Part shown: in pieces, positions 2,461 through 34,625 of the stretch
How the letters are laid out: each line of letters opens with the position of its first letter
Numbering within the stretch: the stretch's first letter is position 1
DNA from: Chlorokybus atmophyticus
Lineage: Eukaryota; Plantae; Mesostigma and Chlorokybus algae
NCBI GenBank assembly: GCA_009103225.1
Contig: RHPI01000160.1
Span: forward strand, 49,377-113,376
DNA length: 64,000 nucleotides
Direction: 5' to 3'
Position numbers and translations under genes: made by a program
Notes under the pieces: generated by a model
What the model was told of the DNA's origin: nothing
Seen by the model: the letters and a program-made list of their open reading frames with translations, nothing else
Databases searched by the model: none

Positions 2461-3364
2461 CGATGTACATACCACAGTTGCACATCCCCGCGTCGTGCGC
2501 CGCGGATCATATGGTCTTAACAAGATTAAGTGCGGCGCCGGCCGGTTTAGGGCTTCGTAAACACCTTAATCATCAAGGCCGAAACTATAACCGTACAAAC
2601 ACGTATTGACGCGCATTGATTACCGCACACGACCGATACCGGTATTATTCCATGTGTGACTTGCGTCCCAGACGTATCGTGCTACTACTATGGCGTGCGT
2701 TCCACGCAATGCGATGTGTCTCATCCGGATCAAGCTAATGGAGAAACTCTTTATCGTAGGTCTTTAGAAGTATACGGATGTCAGTCACAAGTACCTTGCG
2801 TACCCAAACAGGCAGCTCATCTGCGAATGTTATGCAGAGTGAGACAACAAACTACGTTGAACAACAGCAATGTTGAAGGCTTACCATCGTTAAATACAGT
2901 GTCATGCACTCTGCGCACATGATCATCCCCCTCGAGCACCATCTTCACCTCCACAGTGCCTTCCGCTACAGGAACTTTTGGAGTTCCACAGCAAGACTGC
3001 ATCATCGCCTTTGAACTCTTGGAACTTGAAGTTTTAAAGGGCTTGGACTTCGCCCTAAAGTGAGGGTGTCACAGCCCACTCGACCACAAAAGACTTGTTT
3101 GCTTTTATGGTCGATTTGTGGTTATTTGCCTTCGCGTTACAGAGGGGCTCTCTTCGTTGAGAGCCACAAGTTGCTGAGAGTCTCAGCCTAAGACGCCTGT
3201 GCATAGTCATACATGTTGTAATGTGGTTATGCAGGAGTTGATAGATGTGCTCTTACCTTCTTGCGTGCTTAACGTGCCGAAGCATGTGTATGAGACATCG
3301 CCAAGGTTTGACGTTGTTCATCAGCAGCACATCGTGCAGCATATTAACAGCAATATTCTCTACT

Positions 3365-3560
3365 AGCTCCTTAGCTGCATTTGCTTTCGTGGCTTTGGCA
3401 GCCCGTTTCTTGGTCCCTTACTCCTTGGCCGCCTTGTCATTGGCGGCCTTGTCCTTGTCGTCCTCATCGCCATCAGCATTCTCCTCATCCTCCTTATTCT
3501 TCTCATCAGCGCTTCGTAACTTAAGTTTGTCATGCCTGTCGCCCGGGCATGCCAGTCGTC
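3365..3560 (-). pseudogene. Lys/Glu/Asp/Ala-rich coding remnant of unknown family
   Basis: The minus strand reads DEKNKEDEENADGDEDDKDKAANDKAAKE*GTKKRAAKATKANAAKE with an in-frame stop. It resembles the remnant at 19380-19640. Confidence 0.3.
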
Positions 3561-4354
3561 ATCGGGCATGCCTACAGCGAGACCCTCGCCCGGCTTACCA
3601 GCATGGCGACCCGCGCGTGTCTCTGACCAGTAGCTAGGTCATGTCTCTAGAGTAGCTCATGACTATAGCCTACATAGGCACCGCGCGTAGGTGTTCAATT
3701 GTGTGTTCAGTTATAAGTCGGGTTCTATATCGAGTGGGGATTTCCTATGGAAATAGCCTCGATATGACCATTAGCTTATGTTCTGGACAGTCATGAGTTG
3801 ACTTGTATAAGTAGGCACAGTGTTCACCGGATCAGCTGGAAACACTGGAAGTGAGAAAGCTAAGAGCTTGTGAAGCGACTTGAACTACGAAACACGCCGT
3901 CCCGGTTCCCAAGAATCCCCTCATCGTGTGAGAGCCTGTGCATGTTCTTGTGCAGCCTGTGCTTGTCTTTGCTGTGAGCTTTGTGTACTTGGTCGCGGTG
4001 TGCTTGTTGGCATCAGTCAGGGCATAGCATCCACGTGTTGCTTGCTCATTCACCTCACTTAACAGTGCAATTTCTCTTCCACTCATGCAAAGAACTGTGT
4101 AAACAGCACTACCTACAGTAGTGGCTCGTTGACTTACAGTGTCACCCTCTTTGCTCAAGTGAGTGTAGTTGCAGGCTGCACATCAGCAGCGCAATCTGTA
4201 GTTGTACACATCGCAGTGCATCATTGTCACCGTCATTGCATAGCGCGCACAAGTGCTAGTGTGTTGGGTGATAGCAGCATTGGAGATCCCTTGTAGAGCA
4301 TTGTAGAGCACAAAGACTCTACCTTTCATCCACTTTCACCATCGCATCAGCTGT

Positions 4355-6088
4355 ATGAGCAGGCCCACCCCTTTCTCGCCAATAGAAGAAGGGAACCTCA
4401 ACAGCTGGAGCCCGGCCTCCAACCTTACCTACGAGTGCGCAAGTGAAAGGAGCGGTTACCGTAGCAGCAGAGGCTCACGCCCGTCTCCGGCTTGACCTCC
4501 TCTCACTCCACTCCTCGACAACGAGCATCTCCACCACCGTCGGACAGCGACGACGAGGAGATGAAGCCTTCCAGCTCAACCAACTCCCTACGCTTCTCCG
4601 GACGCCCTGGCACCACCTCACTTGACGAGTTCAACATCAATTTCCACTCCAAGATGCGGCAGCAAGCCCTCAAGAGCCTGGACAAATGAGGTATCGTTTC
4701 ATGTGTCCGCTCAATACCTTGATCACGAAGCACATGATGTGTGGAAGTCCGTCGCTGAGTTGCACAAAATTGATGGCTATAGCGAGTTGGCCAGCACAAT
4801 AGCCTCCACGTCACTGCGTAGCCCATCGGTTACTGTCCCTATAGCAGCGGCCCCGCCAGCCTCAGTCACGGGTCTCACTCTAGCTGCAGCTATGGAGAAG
4901 GCAGAGAATGAAGAAGTTGAGGTGGTAGTGGCCTCATTGACTCCTGCAGAGATCGAAAGCAAGAAGGCCGAGCGCCGGATCAGGATACTCAACTGCATCG
5001 CTGCCATCATCAGGGAGCAACAAGAGGAGCAGCAAGCTGCAGCGTTGGAGGTGGGTACGCCCCTGCTACCAACACCGAACTCGCGTGCTCCAGCGGGAGG
5101 CAGTGTTTTCACCCTCGGCTCAGTGGCATTGCGTGCACCCGCGCTTACGGTGGGCGCGGCCATATTGGACTCCCCGTTGAAGGACCTCTACGCCGCACTC
5201 CGGCGCACCTTCCCACCTCAAACCAACAGCAAGGTGGAGGAGTTGAGGCGTTTTCGACGGAAGCCCAACGAGGACCCTCTCCGACTGTATTCACGGTTGG
5301 AAGGGGTGCTTAAAGACACTGACTACAAGATCGTTAGTGAGGAGGCGGCAGCAGTGGTGTATGTGGCCGAGATGAATCCCACCCTGAGTGAGTCAACGCG
5401 CCTGACGCTGAACTACAGCAGGCCCCTCGGCTACACCCTCAAGGAAGCTTTCGAGACTGCACAAGCCATCCACAAGCGCGCAGTGTATGAGAAGGCGATG
5501 CTGGACACCAACCGTAGTGCCTCGCGGCCTATGGCAGGCACAAGTGCAAAGCCTCTTCGGCGGGACCGCGGCCGAGAGCCGCAAGGTATCCACAACATGG
5601 ATAAACGGTCAGCTCATGCTGCCCTTGTGGCCCCAGTGCTGTGCCACCGGTGTGGTCGACATGGCCATTACCAAAAGGAGTGCACCGAAGATTACGGCAA
5701 CCTTGGGTGCGACTATTGCCACAAAACGGGACACTTGGAGACAGTTTGCTGGCTCAAGTTCCCTGAGCTGCGGCCTTCTATTGGCTACAACAATAGCAAC
5801 AACGCTGTTGGCTACCGCGGCAACAACAACAACAACAACAACAACGGGGGCTACAACAACAGCAACCACGCTAGCGGCTACCACAACAGCAACATCGCTG
5901 GTGGTCGCAACAATGGCAACAACGCTGGTGGCCACAACCCCAACAACAACAACAACGCTGGGGCCCGCAAGGAAGAAGCTGGCTATAGAGGGAAAAACCG
6001 CCCTCCACAGCACAAAAGACCTGAGGGACGTCCTCGCGCTGGAGCTGCTGCTGTAAAGACACCAGCCAATCCACCAACTATTGACTGA
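4355..6088 (+). pseudogene. gag: Gypsy Gag with two CCHC zinc knuckles and an Asn/Gly-rich tail (frameshifted near 4680)
   Basis: FSGRPGTTSLDEF in one frame continues as WTNEVSFHVSAQYL in ORF 4622-6088. Knuckles CHRCGRHGHYQKEC (5642-5683) and CDYCHKTGHLETVC (5708-5749), both CX2CX4HX4C. The start codon at 4355 is tentative. Confidence 0.8.
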
Positions 6089-8460
6089 GTGGCAGCCCTG
6101 ATGGCGCGCGTGGCACAGCTGGAGGAGAACAAGGAGCAGGATTATCAAGCCTACTACGCTGCTAGGTGGGCACTGATGGCACCAAAACGGGATAGGGACA
6201 CTCCCATGCCGTTACGCGTGCAACCATCAAGACGTGCGCGCAGAGAAGCTGGCGCGTCGTCAACAGCGGCATCGTCGGACGCCACAAGTGGTCCTCGGCA
6301 GCCACAACCACTGCTGGGACGACGCCGTCGACGACACCGTCGGCGTCCAATTCCGACCGCGACAGCAGGTGTCAGCACTCTGGGCACCACGCTGTCCCTG
6401 GTGATGGAAAGCACCCACGCCGCAACAACCATGGTCGTTGGGTTCGAGGGTGGTGAATCCACCACTCCTGCCTCCATCGAAGCGACCACATCGGCCGCAA
6501 CTGCTGCCACCCTCACAGCCGCCACCTCAGTAACGACGACTGCTGCAGGTGCCACCACCATCGCCTCCAGTAGTGCTGCCGCACCCACTGCACCACTCCC
6601 TGAGATTCGAACGGCACCGCCACCAGCACTTGACGTCACACAGCAAGTGCCACGCGGACCACAAGCAGAACGCGCCTGGGCGTCGGTGGTTCTACGCAAC
6701 GTGGAGCCCACCACCATTGCGTACGGACCAGGGGGGCGACGCACCACGTGCGTGGCACGCGATGATCGCATCTTGCCCCTTCCACCTCCAGAGTACCACA
6801 CGCTGCCGGAACCCACACAACAGCAGCTGGAGGATGAAATCCTCGCCGGCACTGCACCAGATGAGGGATCGTCTCTTCGGGGTCACCTACCGGCGACCTG
6901 CCGCGTTGGAGCTGGCCATTCAGTTGTTCTTGGCATTACACGCACGATTGCAGGGCGCACCCAGTCAAACGCGGCAACCCATGCCCGCTCAACAAATCGA
7001 CTTCGAGCCCTCGCCACTGGACCCACTCGGACTCCAGCGCCACAAAATACAAGACCTCGTGGTCACCATGTCAAACATCGCGCTGGGCGCTGATCTCGCT
7101 CTCCGGGGGCTCACTCCAGGCAGTCGTCAAGAGCGTTTCTCTGCCCTCGAACAGGCACAAGGTTATTAGGTGGACCAAGCTGTCCAAGTGGACGCACGCC
7201 AACAGGCATACGAAGCAGCACACGCCATTATTGTCCCAACCGTAGCTCCGGTAAATGTTGCCAGCGCCTCCACGGCGCTGACCACAGGGTACTCCACGGC
7301 AGTCGCCATCGAACAGGCAGGACAAGCAACTGTTGCAGACCAAGCGAGGGCGTTGGCACAACAATTGAGGGGGGTAATCGCCCCGCTGCTGCCTCCTTTG
7401 GTCGAAGACATGCCCGAGGATCAATGCGATGCAGGGCGAGGGTACCTCACCCCGCAAGGGGACACCACACAACGAGGAGGAGCTGGTGTGGTGGGGGAGC
7501 AACAACTCCGTACCGCACTCATCCGGCAAGCAGTCATGTTGCACAGGTCTGAGGGCAACACATTAAGACAGATTATGGGGATGCAAGAGGGCAGCGCCGC
7601 TCGAGCCCGTCTCGTGACATGGCTCGTTGCCAATCACCCTGCTGTCCCCCTGTTTGCCTTTGACAACCGAGCATCATGGTTGGGGGCATTCGTTCGCTCG
7701 CTGCGACAAGCATACGACGAGGCTGCCACCACAGCCCCGGACACGCTGGAGGGAGTGCAAGAGGCAATGCTGCGGCTGCCAGGGGTGGAAGCCGCACGAC
7801 AATGGCGGCGCATCGCCATTGCTCATGAGCTACACGCACAGCAGACTGACCTCCAGCGCACCCTACGCGCGCGCGCCATGACCGTGCTCGACGTGGGAGT
7901 GGTACAAGGAAGGTGGGATGCCCGCATGGCAGGGATCTTGCGCGTCCCCACCATCACCCACGACATGCGGCGACAGCTACCACGCGCCGTATACCTGCAG
8001 CCCATGCCTCAATATCATCATTGGACCGACACGGACACCGAGCCCACGGCCACGCGGGAAGGGACGTTGGTCAGAGAAGCGGCTCATGCTGTCCGATGGA
8101 CGTACGCCGCGGAACAAGCTGAACGTGAGGCAGGCCCACAAACACCGGGTCCGCCGGGGTTTCTACCACAGCCATTGGGTACACCCGCGGGCATGATTCC
8201 ATCTTCGCAGAGGCGGCATCCACCGGCGCCGCCACCACAACCGGCGCCGGAACCTCCAGCACCGAGCCCCCCCCGTGTTTACCAACCACCACGACAAGGT
8301 CGATTCGGCAGAGGGAGAGGGCAAGGAGGGGGTTCTTCGGACTCAGCAGGCAGAGGAGCTCTGGCTGCCATGCGCTCAGCACCCCCAGCTGAGAGAACTG
8401 AGGCGAAGGCGCAGACAGCTCGTATGAAGAGGCTGCGTATCGACGCCAATGCTGCCATAG
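6089..8460 (+). pseudogene. Unassigned polyprotein segment between Gag and protease
   Basis: In frame after the gag TGA. One extra base near 6848 and a TAG at 7167 interrupt an otherwise continuous frame that runs into the protease. It is Thr/Ala-rich, then predicted helical, then Pro/Gly-rich. Confidence 0.55.
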
Positions 8461-8810
8461 TGGCAAACCAAGGCAAGCACGTTACCATCAACGGCCTGGC
8501 ACCCAAGCGAGTAATGTTGGACACCGGAGCACAGCCTGTCATCATCGGGCGCTTCCTCGCGCGGTCCCTCGGCATAACCAGCTCCAACTTGGTGCCTTGC
8601 CCATACGTGTTGGACACTGCCACAGGTAGCCGAGATAAGGTGATGGGAGTCACCAGGGAGGCCTTTTGCATTCGGTTGACAGGGCTGGACCCAACCCACA
8701 CAACCGAGATCGTCTAGCAATGTGTGGTCACCAATGCCGGCTCCTTCGACTTTCTGCTTGGGCAGGACTTCAACTTCCCTGTGGGCATGGGCCTCGACTG
8801 CTGGACAGAT
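8461..8810 (+). pseudogene. Retropepsin-type aspartic protease
   Basis: RVMLDTGAQPVIIG with DTG at 8520-8528, followed by FDFLLGQDF after an in-frame TAG at 8715. Confidence 0.85.
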
Positions 8811-9184
8811 CGAGCGTGGTTTCGGCCACATTGGGATGAGGATAACGGAGAGGTGCAGGTTTTCTGCCTCTCGAGTAAGTCTCGCGCACGCGCGCCCAAC
8901 GCAAAGTGGCTGCCGTGGCTACACGCAGCCACGCCCGCACACGGGAGGCTGCAACGGCCACATACGATGGCGCTCGGACGCAAGTCGCTGCGGGTGCCAC
9001 GGCCCCGTGTCGAACCGTCGACTCCTCTCCCACCCCGTACAACGAGGAGCAGGAGGATGCCACCGTGGAAGTAGCATTACAAGACCCAGCTGAACGACGC
9101 TGGCGCGCACAGGTGGATGCACACGTCTTGCTCAGCCATCCACTGATCACCACGCGCTTCCCCAACTACTGAAGCCACGACAAG

Positions 9185-10486
9185 GTGCAGGACCACCATA
9201 TGGTGGCCACCGGCGTGGTGGAGTTCCACACATTTCGCAGACAACAGGGCATCACAGTGTTGGAGCTATTCGGAGGCATTGGCAGCGGTCTTGCCGCGGT
9301 CCTCAACACGGGTGTGAAGGTGGTCAAATACTATTACTGTGACCCAGACCCACACGCGCAAACGGTCCTCAAGCACCACCTACGCCAATTGCACGAAAGG
9401 TATTCACATCAACTACCCCTGTCGGCGTTACAAGGTAGCCTCAAAGCCTTGCCACAAGACATCCGGCTGATCATTAAAGATCACCTACTGTCCCTCGGCA
9501 ACGTCGACCTATTGATAGCTGGATGGGAATGCCAAGGGCTCTCCAGGGTAGGCAAGGGGCAAGACCTCGAAAACTCTCGCTCCGGGTTGTTCTGGGAGCT
9601 GATGAGAATCATCCACCTCCTTCAACACCACCAGATCTCCAGACCCCTGGGGTATGTTATCGAAAATGTGCATTCAGAGGACGACAAGCGTCCGCACGTG
9701 GCCTCCAGCTACCGACAAGTTTGCTCCATTCTGCGGCACCCACTCAAGGTGAACGCGGCACGACATGGCTCGCGCGCACATCGTGTACGTGCCAAGTGGA
9801 CAAACTTGGCCACCGTGAAAGAGCTCATGACCGCAGAATACACGCGCAGCGCTCGGCCACGCAACCTGTTGGTCGATGACATCCTTGACCCCGGCCGCAC
9901 AGCACAACCTGTCCTGCGTCATGACCACCACCACTTCTACCCGTGCAATCAGCCCGGGCAGCCCCGTCGCGCACTCCCCACATTGGTGTCCTACTCGGGC
10001 TCCTACGCATTTCGGAACGGTGGTGACGGGATGGTGTTCGATGCGACCACCAACAGGCTGGAAGAACCCAACGCACGCGAACGTGAACGCGGCATGGGAT
10101 TCTTCCCCAACATCATCACGGGTTCATCGCTGACAGATAGTCAGCAATGCCAGATGCTTGGTCGCGCCATGGACCAGAATAGCATGGTATGGCTGCTGGA
10201 GCTGAGCTTCGCATTGCAGGACCGCCACGTGTCCTTCGAGGATCTCGAACACTTGGCTGGGGGGTGGGCTGATCGCGTAGCCGACACCAAGGCAGCTCAC
10301 ACAGCCCTCGAGGTGGTCCACATGGAGGAGCAAGCAGCAGTGACAGTGGAGGACATTCCCGTGGTTGCCAATGCAACCTCCTGGGACCATGCCATTGGCC
10401 CGTTGGCCACAGAAGACACTCGAGAGAAGCTGGAGGCTTCCCTCAACAAATGGAGGAGCCAATTCAGCTTCAGTATGAAGGAATAG
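9185..10486 (+). CDS. Retrotransposon-encoded C5 cytosine DNA methyltransferase domain (open 433-codon stretch of the polyprotein)
   Basis: Motif I LELFGGIG (9260-9283), II YCDPD, III QDIRLI, IV AGWECQGLS (Cys 9530-9532), V SRSGLFWE, VI IENV (ENV 9662-9670), VIII AHRVR (HRVR 9779-9790), IX EPNARERERGMGF, X MLGRAM, all in canonical order. Confidence 0.93.
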   Translation: MQDHHMVATGVVEFHTFRRQQGITVLELFGGIGSGLAAVLNTGVKVVKYYYCDPDPHAQTVLKHHLRQLHERYSHQLPLSALQGSLKALPQDIRLIIKDHLLSLGNVDLLIAGWECQGLSRVGKGQDLENSRSGLFWELMRIIHLLQHHQISRPLGYVIENVHSEDDKRPHVASSYRQVCSILRHPLKVNAARHGSRAHRVRAKWTNLATVKELMTAEYTRSARPRNLLVDDILDPGRTAQPVLRHDHHHFYPCNQPGQPRRALPTLVSYSGSYAFRNGGDGMVFDATTNRLEEPNARERERGMGFFPNIITGSSLTDSQQCQMLGRAMDQNSMVWLLELSFALQDRHVSFEDLEHLAGGWADRVADTKAAHTALEVVHMEEQAAVTVEDIPVVANATSWDHAIGPLATEDTREKLEASLNKWRSQFSFSMKE

Positions 10487-10751
10487 GGTACATGCTCAGT
10501 GTACCAGATGGACATCGAACTGGTGGACACTGAGCCGGTGTTTCGACGGCAATACAGGCTCTCTAAGTTGGAAGAGGACTTGGTGGAACAAAGATGTAAG
10601 GCGCTGCTTGATGCAGGCCTTATCGAAGAGTCCACATCGGACTTCGCAGCAGCAACCGTCATGCCACAAGAAGGATTCAGCAGGCAATTGGAAAGAACGA
10701 CGCATGTGTGGCGACTATCGCCCCCTCAACAACAAGACCAAGCAAGACAGG
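10487..10751 (+). pseudogene. Gypsy reverse transcriptase, 5' part (split by the Copia insertion)
   Basis: PVFRRQYRLS..LLDAGLIEESTSDFAAATVMP, then after a 1-nt frameshift KDSAGNWKERRMCGDYRPLNNKTKQDR, ending at the ACAGG TSD. Confidence 0.9.
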
Positions 10752-11175
10752 TGTTGAGAGAATTCGTACATACGATCAGCATCGACCCTCCACACAGGAG
10801 TAGAAGGTCGTAAGGACGAGCACTAGGTCCGGACTTAGCAAGATGGCATCGTCGGACCAGACTCCGGACTCCAGACTGGCGCCTTACTAACTGCTTTGTA
10901 TCTCCGCGTATACTTACTCATATTGGGCGTGTAAGAGCTTGTTGGAAAGCTCTGGTTGTAAGGAAGACAACAAAGCTTAGAGCGCGTCAAAAGGCTGGGT
11001 ATAGCTTACGCAGTGCTTGCAAACGTAGACGTGTGTGTAACCGGCTGGTATAAGAACCAGCGGACAACTTGTAATAGATGAATGTGATGTGACTTGTGTA
11101 TGCTCTGGTGGCGGTAGCTCTGTCCGTGTGTATCCATGCTTGCCTCAGCTACATGTGCATGCTAGTCCTTCAACA
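10752..11175 (+). repeat. Copia 5' LTR
   Basis: TGTTGAGAG...CCTTCAACA; differs from the 3' LTR at 2 positions by visual comparison. Confidence 0.97.
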
Positions 11176-11188
11176 GGTTATGGGCCCA
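11176..11188 (+). promoter_or_regulatory. Copia primer-binding site for a cleaved (half) initiator tRNA-Met
   Basis: GGTTATGGGCCCA directly after the LTR is complementary to the TGGGCCCATAACC anticodon region of eukaryotic tRNAi-Met. Confidence 0.9.
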
Positions 11189-11302
11189 CACTACGCTTGA
11201 GGAGTGTGAGACTAGCTTGTGTGCATAGTAGTTCTACACTACGGTAGCTTGTTGGTAGCAGAGCCTTGGGTGTCAACTGCAAGAAAGGCAGGCTCGACAG
11301 AA

Positions 11303-14300
11303 ATGGAGGCGACCTACGACAAGGGGCAGATTGCAAAGCTGGACACCGACAACTACAACACATGGTGCGTGGAGATGAAGGCCTTGCTCATCCACAAGAA
11401 GGTGTGGAAGTACGTTGATCCGAAGGCACCACCACCAACACCAGGAGCGAACACTGTGTGGTCAGAGCATTCAGCAGAAGCACACTCTTTGCTTGTGTTG
11501 AACAGCAAACCGCATCACTTTCCCATGCTCACTGCATGTGAAGATGGTAGACAAGCTTGGGAAAAGCTATCAGCCGTTTTCAGAGCCAAGAACAATGCCA
11601 GAAAGTTGCATCTACGCAAGCAGCTCAGCGCACTCAGGAAGGAGGCAGCAGAACCCATCACAAAGTATGTTGCGCGCGCGAGAGAGCTGTGGGCGGACCT
11701 CATCAACGTCGGCCACAACATGGGGGAGACGGAGGTAGTGCTGGCCATTGTTGCAGGGCTACCAGCAGAGTACGAGGTCGTCGCAACCCTGCTGGAGACG
11801 TCATCATCGGAGTTGACGTTGGACGATGTGCTACCGAAGCTGCTCACCGTGGAGCAGAGGGTTGTGAAGAAGGACGAGCAAGCGGATGCCGTCGCCTTCT
11901 ACACCGGCAAGCACGCAAAGAAGAGCAACCATGAAGAGAAGTACAAGGGCAACAAGCCAGGCAATCCTCGTCACAAAGACCTCACATGCCACTGGTGTGG
12001 TTGGAAGGGGCACATTGTGAAGGACTGTAGGAAGAAACAACAGGGGCAACCTAGAGCAAGCACCAGCAACAGCGGCAACGAGCACCAACACAAGGAGAAA
12101 CATGTCGCCTTCACTGCATCCAGTTCGAGGGCGGGCACAGCTTTCTGGGTGGTGGACTCTGGCTGCGATCGTCATCTCACACCAAACAAGGAGGTGATGG
12201 AGGGCTACAGGAAGCTGACGTCCACAATCAAGGTGGCGGGCTTCGGTGGCGAAGTACTGGTGGCTGAGGGAGTTGGCAACGTACGACTCCAGTGCAAGGT
12301 TGGTAACACACTACGCGAGGTGTTGTTACGCAACGTCCTGCATGTTCCTAAGGCTATTGCGAGTCTATTCTCTGTGAGGGTTGCGGAGCGCTTAGGCGCG
12401 GAGATCCTATTTCGGAAGGGTGGCTGCTCAGTCATCCTTGATGGGGTCGTGCACATGGTTGGAATCGCTGATCCGGGAGGGCTCTACCACGTGGAGCAGC
12501 CTCAAGACAGAGACATTCAAGCCATGGTGGTGAAGGACAAGGAGTCGCCAACATTGTGGCATCGAAGGTTCGGGCATCTCAGCTACGTCAACCTCACTCG
12601 CCTTGTCGCTGAGAAGATGGTCAAGGGCATCCATCTCAGCACAGAAGAACTCAAGACAGCATCAGGTGCACTTTGTGAACCATGCCTGGTTGCAAAGCAG
12701 CATGCTATGCCATTCCCATCATCCTCTTCTAGCAGTCAGCATCCTTGCGAGCTTGTGCACATGGATGTCTGTGGCCCTATGCGCATTGTGGCGAAGGGAG
12801 GGGCCAGGTACTTTGCTACGTTCCTCGACGACTACAGCAAGCTGTCCATCATCTTTCCATTGACGCTCAAGTCAGAAGTTGCTGGAGCTGTGCGCACAGT
12901 CGTGGCCTTGTTGGAGACGCAGTCTGGCAACAAGATGAAGGCAATGAGGAGTGATCGAGGAGGGGAGTACATCAACAAGGAGTTGAAGGAGTTCTTCGCC
13001 AGCAAGGGCATACGCCACGAGACAACGGCACCCTACACCCCGCAGCAGAATGGAGCAGCTGAACGCCTCAACAGGACACTCTTGGAGCGTGTTCGAGCCA
13101 TGCTCAACGACACAAAGATGGAAGACAGTTTGTGGAAGGAGGCGGTACTCACTGCCAACTACATCCGCAACAGGTCTCCGGTGAGCTCAGAGCAGAAGAC
13201 TCCGTGGGAGCACTTCTATGGAGCCACACCAGATGTGAGTGGTATGCGTGTGTTTGGATGCACGGCATATGCACTAGTGCCTAAACAGCTCAGGCACAAG
13301 CTGGAGCCGGTCAGCAAGAAGGGCATCTTCGTTGGCTATGAACCGGGTTCCAAGGCTTACAGGATCTTGCTCGAGGACACTCAAAAGATCATTGTGAGCA
13401 GAGAGGTGGTTTTCCACGAGGGATTATCACAACCAGAAGCAGACTTCTTTCCTAAAGATGAAGCACAGCCGGAGCATCCTGAAACAGTGGAGGCTACAGG
13501 CAAGGCCATCATCGATGATAAGGGTGAGCAGGACTCTACTGTAGCAGACAAACAGTCGCACCTGCAGCAGGAGCACGCAGCTCGGAGATACCCAGTGAGG
13601 GAGAGAAAGGCACCTGACTTCTTACACAAGGCACACGTCGCCAGTGTGCAGAATGAGGAGCCAAGCACCTACGAGGAGGCATTGTTAGCACCAGATGCGG
13701 AGCAATGGCAGCGTGCTATGGACGAGGAGATTGCGTCACTCCATGCCAAGAACACTTGGTCACTGGAGCAGTTACCGCAAGGAGTGAAGACCATTCCAGT
13801 GAAATGGGTCTTCAAGGTGAAGCGTGATGGTCAGGGCAACATTGAGCGCTACAAGGCAAGACTGGTGGCAAAGGGCTTCTTGCAGCAGGAAGGTGTGGAC
13901 TTCAACGAAGTGTTTGCACCTGCAAGTAAGCATACCACCTTCCGTGCACTGCTAGCTGTGGTTGCTGCTGAGGACCTCAAGCTGCATCACCTGGATGTGA
14001 AGACTGCCTTCCTCTACGGAGAGCTGGAGGAGGAGATCTTCATCGAGCAACCACCTGGATATGAAGAAGGGGAGAGAGGCACAGCGTGCAAGCTGATCAA
14101 TGCACTGTACGGGCTGCGACAGGCACCGCGTATGTGGCATATCAAGCTCACCAAGGAGCTGGAGGCACTTGGCTTCATCGCATCCTCTGCAGACCCTGGG
14201 CTCTTCATCCATGCAGACAACAAGGTCTGGCTGCTCGTGTATGTGGATGATATAATCATCACCGCCAGGCAGGTGCACCACCTGCAGGAGACGAAACTTG

Positions 14301-15190
14301 CTCTACAGCAAGCATTCTCAGTTCGTGATCTTGGAGAGGCCAAGTGGTTCCTTGGCATGGTGATTGAGCGCGACAGGACTGCTCGCACAATCAAGATCAG
14401 TCAGAAGCATATGGTGAGAAGACTCGGCACCAAGTTTGGGCTCACTGAAGCGAAGACCAAGACCACACCGTTGGCACTTGGCACTGCCCTCATCAAGGCA
14501 AAGGATGAGGAGGTACTCAATAAGGCTTAGTATCCATATGGTGAGCTGGTAGGCAGCATGCTCTATCTGGCAGTGTGCACACGTCCCGATGTTGCACATG
14601 CTGTGGGAGTACTTGCTCGCTACATGTCTGCACCGAGCATGGAGCACTGGAGAGCAGCAAAGGGAGTACTACGCTATGTTGCTGGGAGCGCAACAGTTGG
14701 CATCAAGTTTGGGAGCGGGAGCACTGAGTTGGAGGGCTACTGCGACTCGGACTTTGCTGGTGACCTCAACAGCAGGAGGTCCACTACAGGCTACGTCTTC
14801 AAGCTGAACGGAGGCGTGGTGAGCTGGAACAGCAGGCTGCAGCCAACAACAGCAGCATCTACATCAGAGGCTGAGTACATGGCAGCGGCAGCAGCAGTAA
14901 AGGAGGCACTCTGGCTTCGCAAGCTCATGGCAGACTTGGAGCACCCCATGGCGTGCATCGTCATCAACTGTGACAACCAAGGAGCCATCAAGTTGTTGAA
15001 GCACCCTATCGCCTCGGCAAGGACGAAGCACATTGATGTCATGCATCACTTTGTGCGTGACAGAGTCACAAGGAAGGAGGTGGAGTTTCAATACTGCAAC
15101 ACCGAGGGCATGCTGGCGGACTTCATGACAAAGCCATTGTCACCACTCAAGTTCAAGACTTGTTGTGCAGGACTTGGCATCTGTGTTTGA
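11303..15190 (+). CDS. Copia Gag-Pol polyprotein with a single in-frame TAG at 14528-14530
   Basis: Knuckle CHWCGWKGHIVKDC; protease WVVDSGC; LWHRRFGHLS; integrase HMDVCGP / SDRGGEY / QNGAAER; RT LVYVDD; RNase H YCDSDFAG / EAEY / CDNQ. The frame continues past the TAG (KA*YPYGELVGSMLY). Confidence 0.95.
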
Positions 15191-15232
15191 CTACAGGAGC
15201 AAGCGTTGGAGGTCAAGCTGCTCCCGTGGGAG

Positions 15233-15656
15233 TGTTGAGAGTATTCGTACATACGATCAGCATCGACCCTCCACACAGGAGTAGAAGGTCGTAAGGACGA
15301 GCACTAGGTCCGGACTTAGCAAGATGGCATCGTCGGACCAGACTCCGGACTCCAGACTGGCGCCTTACTAACTGCTTCGTATCTCCGCGTATACTTACTC
15401 ATATTGGGCGTGTAAGAGCTTGTTGGAAAGCTCTGGTTGTAAGGAAGACAACAAAGCTTAGAGCGCGTCAAAAGGCTGGGTATAGCTTACGCAGTGCTTG
15501 CAAACGTAGACGTGTGTGTAACCGGCTGGTATAAGAACCAGCGGACAACTTGTAATAGATGAATGTGATGTGACTTGTGTATGCTCTGGTGGCGGTAGCT
15601 CTGTCCGTGTGTATCCATGCTTGCCTCAGCTACATGTGCATGCTAGTCCTTCAACA
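15233..15656 (+). repeat. Copia 3' LTR
   Basis: Near-identical to 10752-11175; preceded by purine-rich GTGGGAG. Confidence 0.97.
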
Positions 15657-15661
15657 ACAGG

Positions 15662-16900
15662 TACCCCATGCCTACAGCAGAGGGTATCTTCGATGATGTG
15701 GGAGACTGCACCGTCTTCAGCATCTGGACATGCGTCAAGGGTACAACCAAATCGCCATCAAGGACGAGGACAAGCACAAGACCTCCTTCTGGGGCAACCG
15801 ACAGTTGTACTAATGGAAGGTAATGCCGTTCGGGCTGAAGAATGCCCCCGCCAAGTTTCAACACGTAATGGACAAGGCCTTGAAGGGGCTGGACTGCGCG
15901 CGGTGCTACATCGATGACATCCTCATCTTCAGCCGCAGCAACGAGGAGCATCTTCAGCACATCGAAGCGGTGCTGGAATGACTCAAGGGAGTGGGGATGA
16001 CCGTACACCCCGACAAGTGTACCTTCTTCACCCACAAGGTGCCATACTTAGGGCACATGATTATGCCCCATGGTGTGTATGTGCAGCAGGCAAAAGTAGA
16101 GGCTCTGGCAGCTATCCCTGCCCCGACAGACCTCACACGTCTGCGCGCTTTCTTGGGACTTGCCAACTACTATCGTCGCTTCGCGAAGTCCTTCACGAAC
16201 CGGCGATAGTAGTTGGCAAGTCCCAAGAAAGCGCGCAGACGTGTGAGGTCTGTCGGGGCAGGGATAGCTGCCAGAGCCTCTACTTTTGCCTGCTGCACAT
16301 ACACACCATGGGGCATAATCATGTGCCCTAAGTATGGCACCTTGTGGTTCGTGAAGGACTTCGCGAAGATTGCAAGGCCCCTCAACGAGCTACTGAAGAA
16401 GGAGGTGGAGTTCGCGTGGAAGGAGCCGCAACAGCAGGCCTTCGAGGAGCTGAAGAGCAGGCTCACCACCACTCCCATCCTTCAACGTCCGGACTACGCC
16501 AAGCCTTTCATCCTTCACACCGACTGGAGCAAGCTGGGGATGGGAGCGGTGCTGGTGTAGCACGATGAGAACAGGGGGGGGGGGAGAAGGAGCGGGTGGT
16601 GTCNGCCAGCCGAAGCATCAACAGCGCCGAGGCCAACCACAGCAGCTACAAAGGGGAGTGCCTCGCTGCAGTGTGGGCCATCTCCTTCTTCCGACCTTTC
16701 CTCTTTGGTCGACAGTTCCAACTGATCACCGATCATTAGCCCCTCAAGTGGCTGATGACCAACCAACATCTGACAGGGAAACTTGCTCAATGGGCCCTGC
16801 TGTTGCAGGAATACGACCTCGAGATCGACCACCGTGCTGGCCTCACCAACCAAGACGCCGATGGCCTCAGTCGCAACCCTCACCTCAGCACCAACGACGC
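15662..16900 (+). pseudogene. Gypsy RT (3' part) and RNase H, with stops, frameshifts and an internal inversion
   Basis: YPMP..LDMRQGYNQI..MPFGLKNAP..YIDD (15907-15918)..LRAFLGLANYYRRF; RNase H FILHTDWSKLGMGAVL..YKGECLA..TDH*PLKWL..QWALLLQEYD..NQDADGLSR. Confidence 0.92.
16032..16347. repeat. Perfect 144-bp inverted repeat (fold-back duplication) within RT
   Basis: 16032-16175 is the exact reverse complement of 16204-16347, with a 28-bp spacer. Confidence 0.95.
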
Positions 16901-18596
16901 AACTGGAGCGCGGCATGAGCTCGTCCCTGCAGCAACAACCCCCACCATGGCAGCCATCTTTGCTGCTGCCGCGTTGCGCTCAGGGCGCAAGACCAACACC
17001 ACGGCCTCAGCAGTGGCAAAGGAGATCCCTGCCCTTGATTCTACCGGCCCTACGGCAACCACACCCTTGGGAGACGCCCACGCAGCCGACATTGACGTCG
17101 ATGACACAGAGCTGGCGCCCACAGACACCAGGCAGGACATATGGCAGGACAAGCCATCACTCTCCTTTCTTCAAAGTGGCCAGCTTCCCTCTGGCATGAG
17201 CGCCCGAGAGAAGGACCGAGTCAACCAACGCACCCGTCACTATCGATGGGCAGGTGACAAGCTGTATTGCCGCTTCCACGACGAAGACAAGGAAGTGCCG
17301 ACACCGGGCACACGCGAGGGCATCATCACTTCCCTCCACACTGAGCTTGGACACTTCGGTGTCAAGCGTATAGTCAGCCTAGTGAGGGCACAATATTGGT
17401 GGTATGGGTTAACAAAACAGGTGCAGGGGTTCGTCAGCCACCAGCAGTGTGACATGGTGCGCGCCAGCCTCAACACGCATAGCGCCACCTTGCACCCACT
17501 CCCCATCTCCGGTCTCTTTTACCGATGGGGACTCGACATCTTGGGGGACTTGGCACCCTCAGCGCGCGGCAACCGGTACATCCTGGCCATAATCGAGCAC
17601 TTCTCCAAATGGGTGGAGCTGGTACCATTACCCGACAAGAGCAGCAGGGGGGTGTCTCAAGCCTTCCTCTCTCACGTTCTCAGCCGATTTGGCAGCTGCG
17701 CCGAGGTCATCACTGACCAAGGTACTGAGTTCAGAGGGGAATTCGACACCCTCTTGGACAAATGTTACATCGACCACCGCCGTACCTCGCGTGATCACCC
17801 TCAAGCCGACGGCCTCGCCGAGCGTACAGTACAGACCATCAAGAAGGCACTTCGCAAATACGTGCTGGAGTTTGAGAAGAACACTTGGGATGACCACCTC
17901 CCGTGGGTGGCCCTTGGATATCGACTGTCAAAGCAGGCGGCTCTGCGGGAGTACAGCCCGTACTACCTGGTTTTCGGGCGACCACCATTGCTCCCCTTCC
18001 GTGCGCAGCAGGAGGTGGATCGCGTCGTGAACAACCTCGACGACCCTGACTGGGTGCACCACGACATCACCACACGCGCCGCGCTTTTCGAGCGCGCCGT
18101 CCCCATGGCCTTCAACAACCTGCGCATCGCGCAGCATCGCGACACGCTGCGCTACGAGCGCGTACGCAGCGGCTTCTACAAGGAGCGCCAACGACGGTTC
18201 CAAGTAGGGGATTTTGCCTATCGCATGGCAGCCACCAAAGACACGCTTGACACCTCCGTAGGCCGCACCGTCTACAAGGTACTCAAAGTGTACCCCACAG
18301 GGGTGCTGGACCTCCTTGGTAAAAACGGAGAGAGGTTGAAGGACAACATGGTGAACTGTGCGCCATGTCACCTTCCTTACGTAGCCGGCTTCGGGCGTAT
18401 CCAGCACCCTCTTCCCGCGCGCAGCACACGCTGTGAACGCTGCGGCAGCGCCAGCGACGACGCACTCATGATGCTCTGCAATGGCTGCAACACGGGCATG
18501 CATTGCTACTGCCTGGAGCCACCTTTGGATGCGATACCTATGGAGGAGTATTGGTGCGACGATTGCCGTACCAACGGCCCTCCTCACTTGCGCTAG
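16755..18596 (+). CDS. Gypsy RNase H tail plus integrase with a C-terminal PHD finger (open 613-codon stretch)
   Basis: LHTELGHFG zinc-binding region; DDE core WGLDIL / VITDQG / LAERTVQ; C4HC3 PHD CERC..LCNGCNTGMHCYC..YWCDDC at 18432-18566. Confidence 0.92.
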   Translation: MTNQHLTGKLAQWALLLQEYDLEIDHRAGLTNQDADGLSRNPHLSTNDATGARHELVPAATTPTMAAIFAAAALRSGRKTNTTASAVAKEIPALDSTGPTATTPLGDAHAADIDVDDTELAPTDTRQDIWQDKPSLSFLQSGQLPSGMSAREKDRVNQRTRHYRWAGDKLYCRFHDEDKEVPTPGTREGIITSLHTELGHFGVKRIVSLVRAQYWWYGLTKQVQGFVSHQQCDMVRASLNTHSATLHPLPISGLFYRWGLDILGDLAPSARGNRYILAIIEHFSKWVELVPLPDKSSRGVSQAFLSHVLSRFGSCAEVITDQGTEFRGEFDTLLDKCYIDHRRTSRDHPQADGLAERTVQTIKKALRKYVLEFEKNTWDDHLPWVALGYRLSKQAALREYSPYYLVFGRPPLLPFRAQQEVDRVVNNLDDPDWVHHDITTRAALFERAVPMAFNNLRIAQHRDTLRYERVRSGFYKERQRRFQVGDFAYRMAATKDTLDTSVGRTVYKVLKVYPTGVLDLLGKNGERLKDNMVNCAPCHLPYVAGFGRIQHPLPARSTRCERCGSASDDALMMLCNGCNTGMHCYCLEPPLDAIPMEEYWCDDCRTNGPPHLR

Positions 18597-19067
18597 CAGC
18601 TGAGCTCTGGAGCTAGAACCTCCCCCAAAACCCAGGGTGGGTGGCTTGTTGACTTTGTGTGCTACAGCACAGCATGTACACTAGGGAGAACACCGACTCC
18701 ACCTGCCCGTACTACCCAGCAGCAGCAGACCAGCTGCGCGAAGCACTTGTCACCATAAGAGTGGGGTCATCTTTTGTTTTTGCTGCGCGTTACACAGGTG
18801 GCGCAGCAGCATGTCCAGCACAACATGGCTGTCCATGCAGTTGTCCGAGACAGCGTGACCCTCGACTCCCCTCGACCCGACAAGTCGTTGATGTGTAATA
18901 AGCGATTGGCCGCTACGACTCATGCAGCCATACCTACGGACTGCTACATGTGTTATATGTTGGATGTAGCTGGGTTGAGTCACTGCAGATGTTGTTAATG
19001 AACCAACATTAACCTTGGCAAGGCAAAGTCACCGCATATGTTGTTAATGACCCTACACCTTGTCTGT

Positions 19068-19078
19068 AAGGGGGGGAG
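19068..19078 (+). promoter_or_regulatory. Gypsy polypurine tract
   Basis: AAGGGGGGGAG immediately before TGCTATCACCC. Confidence 0.8.
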
Positions 19079-19146
19079 TGCTATCACCCCCTTTAATCCC
19101 CTACCCCAACACCACCAACCACAGCCACGTCGCCGCCCCCGCTGGC

Positions 19147-19368
19147 AGCCAGGGGATCGAAAAGATCCCCTGGCTATGGCGGTCGCTGCGTTAGCAGCGC
19201 CATCCGGCCGATATCGACTTGAGACTCATGTCTAAAGTCGATATTAATGATAAATAACATAACACCTTATTAGGGTCTATAAAGGCCCTAATACGACTTT
19301 AATGGCTGTGTTTATCCCGTTGGGACCCTTATTTCTAATTAAATAAGGGCGGGGAACCGCATAGCGGT
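19147..19368. repeat. Cluster of at least 6 short hairpins
   Basis: AGCCAGGGGATC/GATCCCCTGGCT; CGCTGC/GCAGCG; ATATCGACTT/AAGTCGATAT; TATTAGGG/CCCTAATA; CCCTTATTT/AAATAAGGG; ACCGC/GCGGT. Confidence 0.85.
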
Positions 19369-19379
19369 AGCGCTCCGTT

Positions 19380-22150
19380 ACATTGTCCTTCGCAGCCTGC
19401 TTGCTTGCGGCCGCCTTCTCCTTGGCGGCCTTCTCCTTGACAGCCTTCTCTTTGAAAACCTACTCGGCATATACGCAAGTGCAAGTGTATTGTGATTGAC
19501 ATACATTATACAAAACCTTACATAAGCAATGCGTGCACCCGTTCAATGGAGGCCTCGTCCTCTTGTGTGTCCTCTGCGTCCTCCTCATTACTCTTGTCAT
19601 CGGTGGCTTCGTCGCCCTGTTGGGCCTCATCATCTAAAAAGTTTTTGGCTGCAACAGCGCTCTGCGACTAGAAGCGTTGAGGTTTGATAAGCAATAGACT
19701 ACTACGGGTTGGGCAGCCATATCTTGAAACGTTATGTAGGTTCTGTTGCCTAGATGCCTAGATAGAGCAAAGTATATATAAATTGCATCAATATTAAAAT
19801 TTGCACAGACAATATAGCTATTTGCGCAAGCATTGCTTTTTTGCCCCTTCCTTGAACGTATCTCCTACTTCTTTGCCCACCTTTTCCGCAGGCTGGACAA
19901 TTAGCAATGTGTAATAGCTGAGACTACTGACACAACATGGACAATATACATTGTTCACACAAATACGCTGCACGTAAAATATGGGCACGCGCATGCGCAC
20001 AAGTGTCAGATATATAAAGCATTTCAGCTAAGCACATAATTCAATGCATACCTTTCTCTTTTGCTTTCGTCGATCAATCTTCCCCTCCGCTGCGTTGAGC
20101 GCCTTCATCTTTGCGTGTACACACATATTTGGATTGTTAAAAGGCTAATAGTCGCACCACTTGTAGATGCAACTCCATGCTTACCCAAATGGCTGATTGC
20201 TTGAGCTGTGATAGCTTTCGGCTAGCCTCGTCTCGCAGCTCAAGTATCCATTGCGGGAAGGTTGAGACTCAAGCGCTATTACGTAAAAAAAGTTGGGCGT
20301 TACACGCAAGGACAAGCTGACATTATAAGGAATGTAACATTAATATCGACCGCAGGTAATACAAAACAAAACCAAGCGGCTTACCTTTCAGTATGTATTT
20401 GATCACCGAGGAAATGTTCAACCATCTCATGTTTATGTTTAAAGATTTGTATTAAAATTGACAAAACGCTTCACTTTGCTTTGCACAGTAGGTGTAGTCA
20501 GTTAGCTTAGGCTTTGTATGCGCAACCACTTCAACATGAAACTCAAGGCGTCATACCCGCACTCCTTTACTGTAGTCCTCATGATTGCAGTAAGTGTAAG
20601 GCTCGATTACCTTGATATCATTTCTCATCCTCTTCTGCAAATGTCATGAATACCCAGTATTTATAGCTATACAATCAGCCAAACAAGCGAAGTTGTGCTC
20701 ATTGACAAAGTGTACATGTTGTTACTGTGCAAGCTCGTCTTTCTTCTCCTTAAGGGCTTGTGCATCATCGTCGACAGGCCGTTTTTAACCTACAATCACA
20801 AAAAAAACAAGCAATGCCATAGCTGCTTGACTATTGGCATGCACATGAATGCACACGCAACTTGCTGGTTGAGGCTGCCTATTAACGGCGCTGCTTGTCA
20901 TAAACCTTAGCAAGTTAGTTGACATGCTTGTCCAAGGTCGTCTTTTCTTGCTCATTGCTTCGACAGTTTGCTCATAGAGATCCGCGGGCCAATTTGGCCC
21001 TATACGTATGATCATCTCCGCCTGCAAAAACAAAGCAATCAATTTGTTAAGAACCTTCGCATTTGTGAGCTTGAAGAAAGACACACACAGCTGTTAAACA
21101 ATGGCTGGAACCCTTGCGTCCAGCATACATGTGCATGCTGTGGTTGTTTGCAACTGCGAATGCTTGATCTAGACGCTACAGATGCAAACCCCCTTGCATT
21201 TACCATGTGCATGCTGTGTGAATTAGTATACACAAGAAACAACGCAGGTAACACATCCAACCTGAGCCCTAGCCATGGGCATCGCCTTTTTGCTTATGGC
21301 GATAAGCAAAGCACTTCAGCGCTCTGCCGCAGCTCTCTCTCGCGCCACTTTCAGCTCTGCCATTGCTACTCTAACTGCACCTCCGCAGCGTCAAGCACAA
21401 TACGTAAGTAGAGTTTGCGACATAAAGCTAACGAATTAAGGTTTCACCTTTCGCAACAAAGATGATTAGGGCAGAACCCTAATCATCTTTGTTTATGTGC
21501 TGTTCATTAAGGCAGCAGCAGGGTGGAGGCGACATGGCCAGCGCTTGGCGGAAGCAAGGTGGAGTTGCTGCCGAAGGTGGATTGTTTGGGTCCAACAGCT
21601 CAAGTAGCTTGAGCGATATAGAAAACGACCCTCTGATCCCCTCTGAACCCTCTGGCAGCCAATTTGCCAGGTTAGCTCCCGGGTCGGCAAGCCCAAGCAG
21701 CAGGTCAACAAGCTCCATTGATGTATTCAACTTGAGGCGTGTCCAGCATGGAGAGGAAGCCCAAGGATTGCTGCGTCATGACCAATAAGACCCCCTTCAA
21801 GTTAGAGTGCAACACACACACATGCAATGGCCACCCTTCTGCACTATGCATAAACAGCTTTGCCTCGCATTACCGTCATTTATTGTACTTTTTTGTTGTC
21901 CATGTAAAGATTGCCAGAATCGGTCGGCACTAAAGCACACAACCAAGCGCACACGCAACCGACATATCCGTGCACGTGGACTGCACGATCCGTTGGTAAG
22001 CAATTGTTTGGTTGGCTGAAGTCCGCTATGCTCTCGCACAATTATTAAGCATTTTTCCAAGTAATTGTTTCAAGCTGTGCAAGCAAGCACAGACAAGTTG
22101 TTACAATTTGCAAGAGGCACGGCAAAACTGAACACTTAAAACACTGCACT
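19380..22150 (-). pseudogene. Degraded intron-containing coding remnant, possibly a hAT-type transposase or TE accessory gene
   Basis: GT-AG-flanked pieces with stops: LKLLELLDPNNPP, AEMIIRIGPNWPADLYEQTVEAMSKKRRP (loosely like hAT C-termini), HEMVEHFLGDQIHTER, and a K/E-rich tail KEKAVKEKAAKEK. The family assignment is weak. Confidence 0.3.
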
Positions 22151-33830: not shown

Positions 33831-33914
33831 GTTGAAGCAAGTGATGGTCACTCCACCGTTGATAGCAGCTTCAGTAGTTGTTTGCCTGTGGGTGTGCTAG
33901 TGTTTGTGGTGTAT

Positions 33915-34134
33915 GTGTGTGTGATGGTGTACTTATACAAAGTTTTGCAATCTATTTGTCTTTGCCGTGTTGGCGGTTGTGTGCACGCGCTTGCATTCGC
34001 ACAATTGCATTCGATAGCTTAATGAGTGTATTACGGTGTAAGTTATGAGAAATCTTGCAACCTATTTGCCTTTGCCATGTTGACGGTTGTGTGCAGACGC
34101 TTGCATTCGCACAGTTGCATTCCGTAGTTAATGT
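33915..34134. repeat. Two-copy tandem repeat, period ~110 bp
   Basis: TTGCAA(T/C)CTATTTG..GCTTGCATTCGCACA..TAATG blocks start at 33945 and 34055. Confidence 0.8.
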
Positions 34135-34621
34135 AAACTTGCATTGGATTGGCTTGATGGGTGTGCTTTAAGAGTGCGTGCGAGTGTGCCACACAACCCA
34201 TACTACCGATCATGTATATAAAGGATCATGCACAACGTAGGTAACAAACACTCACATGCAAGACAGCAAGCATAACGGCGACACCGGCATGAACCCTTCA
34301 TCTGACCACGGGCCCCTAGGTTGTGCCCTGGGGTAAAGCTTACAACCTCACAACTCTACCCGGAACTAGCTACGAGCATGCGTGTTCGTGCATGTACATC
34401 CACACGCACGTGCGTGCAGCAAAGTCCCTTGAATTGAATGGAATGACTTAGCTTCTAGATCCGTAAAAATGTTCTTAGGCTTCGTCTACGCAAGCACATA
34501 GTGCACTCCATTTCTTCCATTGGCGTTACTCAATATATCGCGTGCGTGCGTATCAAAAATAGAACCGATTGCACTGGCATGCACAGCATATGCCAGCACA
34601 TATGGCACGCCCACATGCGGT

Positions 34622-34625
<4 letters not shown>

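Follow-up and report, generated by a model that had tools for sequence, protein, structure and literature searches.

Positions 4266-19089 of a 64,000-nucleotide (nt) stretch of Chlorokybus atmophyticus DNA (contig RHPI01000160.1; the window below means this whole stretch) very probably hold a degenerate copy of a Ty3/Gypsy retrotransposon that carries a DNMT3-type cytosine-C5 methyltransferase (C5-MTase) and an integrase (IN) tipped with a PHD finger, and that has been split by a young copia element. This high confidence concerns the identity and the history of the locus; the mechanism that we propose for intact members of the family is graded separately and is tentative. Taken alone, the locus is no more than an inactivated transposon into which another has inserted; what makes it of value is that it points to a family in which a host-derived de novo DNA methyltransferase travels together with a putative histone-tail reader on the integrase.

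A Gypsy remnant and the copia element inside it

The internal region of the Gypsy remnant is about 4277-19078. Pfam and tblastn searches place its domains on the plus strand in the order gag (with a CCHC knuckle), protease (PR), DNMT3-type C5-MTase, reverse transcriptase (RT), RNase H (RH), integrase and PHD finger. The PR-RT-RNase H-IN order of Ty3/Gypsy pol is kept, with the DNMT domain inserted between PR and RT, and the marks of Gypsy membership that were found are an RVT_1-type RT, RT_RNaseH_2, and an integrase with H2C2 and DDE parts. RVT_1, RT_RNaseH_2 and RT_RNaseH were scored by Pfam on separate pieces of a broken frame. The features of the locus, including its long terminal repeats (LTRs) and open reading frames (ORFs), are as follows.

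4266-4276, plus strand: 11-nt GGGTGATAGCA, the exact inverted partner of 19079-19089; two exact sites in the 64 kb
4277-4296, plus strand: TGG-containing run directly 3' of the left 11-mer, a putative primer-binding site (PBS) as read from the sequence
4561-5779, plus strand: gag, with its ATG at 4561, matched to relatives by tblastn
5780-8417, plus strand: GC-rich spacer of 2.6 kb, from nucleocapsid to protease
8418-8870, plus strand: aspartic protease (Pfam Asp_protease_2, E 2e-6; tblastn E down to 6e-24)
9173-10483, plus strand: open DNMT3-type C5-MTase frame of 437 codons, with the domain at about 9233-10274
10487-10751, plus strand: N-terminal part of the Gypsy RT, with a frameshift near 10668, truncated by the copia insertion
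10752-15656, plus strand: nested Ty1/copia element with an LTR pair, an ORF and a target-site duplication
15662-16200, plus strand: Gypsy RT core (tblastn to relative P0157, 53% identity over 157 amino acids (aa), E 8.5e-47; RVT_1 E 7e-14)
16022-16357, unstranded: near-perfect palindrome with arms at 16022-16188 and 16191-16357 (167 nt, 7 mismatches)
16345-16736, plus strand: RT connection and RNase H (RT_RNaseH_2 E 4.5e-15; RT_RNaseH E 2e-12)
16740-18593, plus strand: open integrase frame of 618 codons, with its stop codon at 18594-18596
18432-18566, plus strand: C4HC3 PHD finger at the integrase C-terminus (Pfam E 1.2e-7)
19068-19078, plus strand: polypurine tract (PPT) AAGGGGGGGAG, directly 5' of the right 11-mer
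19079-19089, plus strand: 11-nt TGCTATCACCC, the exact inverted partner of the left 11-mer

The original prediction, made from the sequence alone, took 4266-19089 as a single element and spoke of its polyprotein. The interval turns out not to be one 14.8-kb element, and the polyprotein is broken. One third of the interval (4.9 kb) is a nested copia element, whose 424-bp LTRs (10752-11175 and 15233-15656) differ at 2 positions and form the only long direct repeat found by self-comparison within the first 26 kb of the window. Its ORF at 11219-14530, with a single in-frame stop at 14528-14530, continues to 15190 and contains the Pfam domains Retrotran_gag_2, gag_pre-integrs, rve and RVT_2. The gag-PR-IN-RT order with RVT_2, the LTR pair and a 5-bp target-site duplication (ACAGG, at 10747-10751 and 15657-15661) identify it as Ty1/copia. 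The closest proteins to this copia are 49% identical at most, the best named host being Chromochloris zofingiensis at 46%. It is a young insertion into the Gypsy RT.

Because the copia insertion is clean and the RT alignment resumes across its junctions, the two Gypsy halves were once contiguous. The alignment to P0157, which is intact, ends at 10672 on the left and restarts at 15724 on the right, and the 48 residues of P0157 between these points are accounted for by sequence at the copia junctions. In tblastn, P0157 matches the N-terminal part of the RT through 10672, and a second relative, P0016, matches 10668-10751. To the right of the copia, the Y-I-D-D piece of the RT lies within 15814-15978, flanked by stops at 15811 and 15979. 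Further downstream, Pfam finds the Integrase_H2C2 zinc domain at 17310-17441 and the rve core at 17523-17798, after which comes the C-terminal region of the integrase.

The Gypsy copy is dead and has no activity of its own. There are seven in-frame stops (6086, 8715, 10484, 15811, 15979, 16558 and 16737), and the reading frame shifts in at least six places, namely within gag, in the spacer, in the PR-DNMT interval, near 10668, just past the copia, and at a G-run at 16573-16604. The protease frame is interrupted by the stop at 8715-8717, while the MTase frame ends at the one at 10484-10486. Within gag, residues 1-39 of relative P0314 match the start (4561-4674), and several relatives match 5153-5779 in a different frame from that start (tblastn); the frameshift lies between about 4675 and 5150. 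The capsid-like part spans 5153-5640 and is followed by the CCHC zinc knuckle at 5642-5689, for which the Pfam zf-CCHC score (E 1e-3) is slightly below the cut-off. The spacer at 5780-8417 gave neither homology to relatives, whose counterpart measures 236-460 aa, nor a Pfam match; it holds a CAA/27-nt tandem repeat and the stop at 6086, and its frame changes around 7090-7170.

Further damage is seen in the RT. At 16022-16357 the RT thumb is present twice in opposite orientations, which produces the palindrome, with a natural TTCGCGAA at its centre; a minus-strand tblastn match at 16182-16358 reflects this. This duplication could be a template-switch or foldback event, or else an assembly artefact of long reads. 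We are confident that the copia entered the Gypsy RT after, or during, the death of the Gypsy copy.

CpG depletion was considered as a sign of methylation-driven decay and was set aside, with an observed/expected ratio of 0.75-0.81 in the element versus 0.77-0.81 in the flanks and hence no signal. The stop codons are uninformative on such decay as well, since each is one transition away from a sense codon. As a separate observation, the G-run at 16573-16604, which lies in the RNase H region and coincides with a frameshift, contains one N, and a 194-N gap elsewhere in the window (48415-48624) is directly abutted by a long G-run. The occurrence of G-runs within about 20 nt of N positions suggests that homopolymers troubled the assembly.

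The methyltransferase domain and the PHD finger

The C5-MTase frame at 9173-10483 matches Pfam DNA_methylase (E 2e-9), and its closest solved sequence relatives are DNMT3C, DNMT3A and DNMT3B (E 7e-9). An AlphaFold model built on 59 family sequences has a predicted local distance difference test score (pLDDT) of 93.7 and a predicted template-modelling score (pTM) of 0.91. When it was compared with the PDB by Foldseek, all of the top 50 matches were DNMT3A, DNMT3B or DNMT3C, colinear across the whole catalytic domain with a target-normalised TM score of 0.83. The colinearity of these alignments means that the MTase domain is complete and that its motifs stand in unrearranged order (plant DRM is a rearranged C5-MTase). 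The claim in the original prediction of a C5-MTase with ordered motifs between protease and RT is thus borne out by both the Pfam match and the Foldseek alignments. Companion readers of the PWWP or ADD type gave no Pfam match anywhere in the element, and the captured part of DNMT3 is the catalytic domain only.

The key sites of the domain are the catalytic Cys codon at 9530-9532 (motif IV, W-E-C-Q), the ENV Glu at 9662-9664 and the RxR motif at 9782-9790. Although 59 aligned family members share only 38% identity per column on average, they show no or almost no variation at the catalytic Cys, the ENV Glu, the RxR arginines and several of the glycines that bind S-adenosylmethionine (AdoMet). 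As far as residue conservation can tell, this argues for methyltransferase function in live elements.

Certain features of the domain weigh against that function. In motif IV, a Glu replaces the Pro of the Pro-Cys dipeptide, both in the window copy and family-wide. This dipeptide is near-universal among C5-methyltransferases, and the Glu could alter or abolish catalysis. Moreover, at 8 sites where conservation is 85% or higher the window DNMT differs from the family, 6 of these differences being single C>T or G>A changes, and motif X is weakly conserved in the family. The DNMT3-like module might then have ceased to be a DNA cytosine methyltransferase; during reverse transcription it might instead bind nucleic acid, play a structural part or act on RNA. 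Such a change of role would fit the family-wide W-E-C-Q motif and the weak motif X, which agrees with a remark on K. nitens in the supplement of PMC5890265, as well as the finding that SymbioLINE, one tested retrotransposon DNMT, did not methylate DNA in yeast (PMC5890265). We nevertheless regard it as unlikely, given that the catalytic Cys, the ENV Glu, the RxR arginines and the AdoMet-binding glycines are kept over deep divergence, that the modelled fold is that of a full DNMT3 catalytic domain, and that the K. nitens copies have conserved key residues and a Ka/Ks below 0.2 (PMC5890265).

The integrase ends in a C4HC3 PHD finger (18432-18566), which scores 32 bits in Pfam against a cut-off of 24. 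Pfam found no chromodomain, the mark of chromoviruses, on 16755-18596, which agrees with the earlier proposal of a PHD finger in place of a chromodomain. Across 46 family members, seven of the eight C4HC3 ligand positions (6 Cys and 1 His) never vary, and the final Cys is conserved at 90% or more. The best solved matches to the window's own finger are UHRF2 and UHRF1 (E 8e-12). A profile of the family's PHD fingers has its best matches, at E 1e-25 to 1e-13, in CHD4, KMT2D/C, PHF12, KDM5 PHD1, ATXR5, WSTF, KAT6, BAZ2, DPF3, BHC80, UHRF1 and AIRE. A UHRF1-specific origin was considered and rejected, as the family profile matches CHD4, KMT2D, KDM5 and ATXR5 better, and we claim the broad class only.

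Most of the PHD fingers that the family profile matches read an H3 tail without methylation at K4 or R2. PHD fingers that read H3K4me3 carry a Trp two residues before the His ligand, and this Trp is absent here. Taken together, the nearest solved structures (UHRF1/2, ATXR5, CHD4, KDM5 PHD1, BAZ2, BHC80 and AIRE) support the assignment of the finger to the histone-tail-reader type, as had been predicted, and by sequence likeness to the unmodified-H3 class. Among the points against the overall reading is that the window's finger has a Met where 109 of 116 relatives' fingers have an aromatic residue.

PHD fingers are versatile, and this one could alternatively be a zinc module that stabilises the C-terminal domain of the integrase, or a binder of a host protein or of DNA, with no part in target choice. 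The histone-reading role does rest on sequence likeness, and the finger has been lost in one sub-lineage with the PR-DNMT-RT order. We consider this alternative improbable, since the family profile finds its best matches in the H3-tail-binding class, since the family keeps the zinc ligands as well as the L-L-C-D, P-P-L and G-x-W positions typical of that class, and since the finger occupies the place where chromoviruses have their targeting chromodomain.

The family and its published counterparts

An exhaustive HMMER search with the window's DNMT frame returned 2254 matches. At E<=1e-30 there are 234 protein clusters (50% identity), many of them polyproteins of 1600-3400 aa. The family of Gypsy elements with DNMT and PHD is very large and mostly unannotated, and is found chiefly in metagenomes and green-algal genomes. 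Domain order was typed by aligning the domain segments of the window copy with the best 150 of the 2254 matches: 84 have the order RT-RH-DNMT-IN with the PHD at the end, 18 have PR-DNMT-RT-RH-IN, and the remaining 48 are fragments of untyped order. Both orders were confirmed by Pfam. In an enlarged set, 118 RH-DNMT-IN proteins continue for 60 aa or more beyond the integrase, and 113 of these have the PHD.

The DNMT tree unites all RH-DNMT-IN sequences in one clade, with a support of 94 in the Shimodaira-Hasegawa-like approximate likelihood-ratio test (SH-aLRT), and places the window copy among the PR-DNMT-RT sequences, near P0003, P0124 and P0129. The single clade implies one relocation of the DNMT within pol. 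Similarly, the integrase tree groups the window copy with the PR-DNMT-RT integrases (SH-aLRT 94), its best identity being 51%, to P0309. Among the matches, no protein is more than 51% identical to the copia, the DNMT or the integrase of the window. The window copy belongs to the rarer gag-PR-DNMT-RT-RH-IN-PHD sub-lineage, the commoner order being RT-RH-DNMT-IN-PHD.

These results bear on whether the locus is a chimeric nest, in which a DNMT or PHD from a host gene fragment or another element came to lie inside an ordinary Gypsy and the pairing is accidental. The nested copia at 10752-15656 does sit exactly between the DNMT half and the IN-PHD half, and no second copy of the Gypsy element was found within the 64-kb window for comparison. 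Apart from the question of a nest, the PR-DNMT-RT proteins P0157, P0311 and P0312 lack a PHD, and the finger is dispensable in that sub-lineage; P0319 and P0124 (the latter from the metagenomic locus L003) have the same order and carry it. Against a nest, the ACAGG duplication is clean and the RT alignment carries on across the copia, the DNMT and IN trees lead independently to the same PR-DNMT-RT lineage, and the same architecture recurs in many unrelated contigs and in named genomes. An accidental pairing is hence extremely improbable. The presence of DNMT and PHD in one Gypsy element, as originally predicted, is upheld by the insertion, the concordant trees and the frequency of the PHD among RH-DNMT-IN relatives, and the outcome that would have spoken for a nest, other copies without DNMT or PHD, is contradicted by the relatives' architecture and by both trees. 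Our results support the pairing as a conserved lineage trait of one Gypsy family.

Among named hosts, Closterium spp. have the PR-DNMT-RT order, and Haematococcus lacustris, Monoraphidium neglectum and Chromochloris zofingiensis have the RH-DNMT-IN order with the PHD. The liverwort Calypogeia fissa gave a partial match only. We see somewhat less than an even chance that a DNMT3 writer and an unmodified-H3 PHD reader have long been inherited together as one module throughout a Gypsy clade of chlorophyceans, zygnematophytes and possibly bryophytes, with the DNMT relocated once and with a single DNMT-integrase-PHD protein in the common order.

The closest complete relative with the PR-DNMT-RT order is L003 (1-12780 of an ENA metagenome contig). 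Its sequence recurs every 8770 bp, as expected of an element in tandem or one assembled as a circle, and at its 3' end the terminal repeat is followed by a second copy of roughly its own first 70 nt (B-A-B). In L003, the gag-PR ORF (3862-6936) and the DNMT-RT-RH-IN ORF (7003-11817) are in the same frame with one stop codon between them, and the same holds for a second relative, L005 (461-3367 and 3440-8755). This hints that pol in relatives of this type is expressed by stop-codon readthrough, not by frameshifting.

Gypsy-DNMT3 elements and PHD-bearing algal Gypsy elements have each been published, and the kind is therefore known. KnitGypsy-Dnmt3 of Klebsormidium nitens, later named 'streptophyte Gypsy-DNMT3', has an unrearranged DNMT3 in its Gypsy Pol with conserved key residues and the low Ka/Ks given above, as well as repeats in a DIRS-like layout; the arrangement A-coding-B-A-B was reported for DNMT-bearing elements (PMC5890265). 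The window copy resembles it in having an unrearranged DNMT3-type C5-MTase within Gypsy Pol, in the green lineage, with the catalytic residues kept and motif X weak; furthermore, the B-A-B 3' repeat of L003 resembles the DIRS-like layout. The present family differs in being also chlorophycean and in occurring in two domain orders, and, in a comparison by description only, in its PHD, which appears nowhere in the text or supplements of PMC5890265. K. nitens proteins are absent among the family matches listed, and two contigs of NCBI origin yielded no K. nitens copies. The SymbioDIRS DNMT3 methylates CG de novo in yeast, and Symbiodinium DIRS elements occur in two domain orders (PMC5890265). SymbioDIRS-Dnmt3 thus shares with the present family a DNMT3 in a retrotransposon Pol and two coexisting orders. 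It differs in being a DIRS element with a tyrosine recombinase and without a DDE integrase, in its dinoflagellate host, and in that a PHD goes unmentioned in the text and supplements of PMC5890265. Later papers confine retrotransposon DNMT3 to streptophytes and dinoflagellates.

PHD fusions in retrotransposons are known generally (PMC6673714; Grau-Bove preprint). Gypsy-7a_cRei of Chlamydomonas reinhardtii (Craig et al. 2022, PMC9940879) is, like the present elements, an algal Gypsy with a PHD in pol; by its description it has no annotated methyltransferase, and the figure legend puts the PHD before the integrase (PMC9940879). Chromoviruses also have a chromatin reader fused to the integrase C-terminus, which presumably guides integration through histone marks, but that reader is a chromodomain and not a PHD of the unmodified-H3 class. 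The EpiLTRs/DAM-LTR elements (bioRxiv 10.64898/2026.05.21.726589) combine DNA-MTase modules with a chromatin-targeting domain, in their authors' words an 'epigenetic toolkit'. In that toolkit, known from Euglena and other protists, a chromodomain accompanies a prokaryote-type adenine MTase and, in some elements, a DNMT4-related DNMT; here the two modules are a DNMT3-type domain and a PHD. The conserved DNMT3 and PHD pairing, the two DNMT positions and the chlorophycean spread are undescribed in the literature searched. Novelty, which the original prediction had left undecided, does not extend to the two components, Gypsy-DNMT3 (PMC5890265) and a PHD-bearing algal Gypsy such as Gypsy-7a_cRei (PMC9940879).

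For intact family members, we regard it as possible rather than probable that PHD-guided tethering goes together with a DNMT that methylates the cDNA or the newly made copy. The functions of both domains are inferred from sequence. Through the PHD, the integrase complex would be tethered to nucleosomes that lack H3 methylation at K4/R2, which could turn insertion away from active promoters, much as a chromodomain directs chromoviruses to heterochromatin. The DNMT3 module, which is catalytic and has no PWWP or ADD reader of its own, would methylate the new cDNA or the integrated copy and so give the element the host's own methylation pattern. In the RH-DNMT-IN-PHD order, the adjacent DNMT and IN-PHD could work as a single writer-reader protein, which would echo DNMT3's logic of an MTase plus an H3K4me0 reader. 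Both halves of this proposal have antecedents: cDNA methylation was already proposed with SymbioDIRS (PMC5890265), and PHD-guided targeting has a published analogue in chromodomain targeting and in general remarks on PHD fusions (PMC6673714; Grau-Bove preprint), chromodomain-guided integration being cited as precedent in PMC6673714. If intact members are active, they would offer a natural system for asking whether transposons write their own epigenetic state and choose their own chromatin, and would extend DNMT-bearing retrotransposons from streptophytes and dinoflagellates to chlorophycean algae.

Ends of the element and other repeats in the window

Several results on the ends of the Gypsy remnant count against a Ty3/Gypsy element at 4266-19089. 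An LTR pair for the outer element was not found by self-BLAST of the whole window or by word-7 BLAST of the flanks, nor by Smith-Waterman comparison of the flanks against shuffled sequences. A search for LTR start and end motifs with up to 3 mismatches gave no matching LTR start upstream of 4266, and the right-hand LTR body that would lie beyond 19079 matches nothing upstream of 4266. No target-site duplication could be assigned to the Gypsy element in the window either, since its outer ends are not recognisable. Since the LTRs that mark Ty3/Gypsy elements are missing from 4266-19089, the copy is filed as a remnant on pol homology alone.

The two 11-mers are best read as the inner edges of the LTRs, the left one being the last bases of the 5' LTR and the right one the first bases of the 3' LTR, because a PBS-like run adjoins the left 11-mer and a G-rich PPT the right. 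In L003, a G7 tract similar to AAGGGGGGGAG lies directly 5' of the terminal repeat. No conservation of the PBS was found across relatives. The coordinates of the original prediction imply instead that the 11-nt inverted repeats are the true outer ends of an element without LTRs; no LTR bodies were found outside them, and the GC content drops shortly after 19230. That reading is quite unlikely, as the TGG run after the left 11-mer and the G-rich tract before the right one form the canonical inner-edge layout, the relatives have direct repeats of about 550 bp at their termini with a comparable G7 tract ahead of them, and integrase-type elements need terminal repeats. Thus, of the predicted end points, the exact inverted pair at 4266 and 19089 stands, and its status as the outer boundary gives way to that of inner LTR edges. 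The window was also searched for inverted terminal repeats or a DIRS-like layout, and the 11-mers alone turned up.

The best match between the two flanks, about 87 nt of low-complexity sequence, was rejected as an LTR or target duplication on account of its wrong geometry. It is 70% identical and joins two minus-strand, coding-like pieces (3256-3558 and 19280-19667), in each of which an acidic D/E-rich stretch is followed by a K/A-rich one. These pieces may be fragments of paralogous host genes, or else parts of a further repeat.

Elsewhere around the locus, Rfam and tRNA searches gave zero matches, and the ten ORFs that flank the Gypsy remnant had no informative Pfam match. A repeat family of about 200-270 bp occurs at 40975-45071 in four copies (40975-41175, 42978-43281, 44759-45030 and 44871-45071) that are 84-86% identical and lie in both direct and inverted orientation. 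Finally, short tandem and dispersed direct repeats cluster in a GC-skewed stretch at 33198-34703, which includes perfect 36-48-nt tandem copies at 34626-34703.

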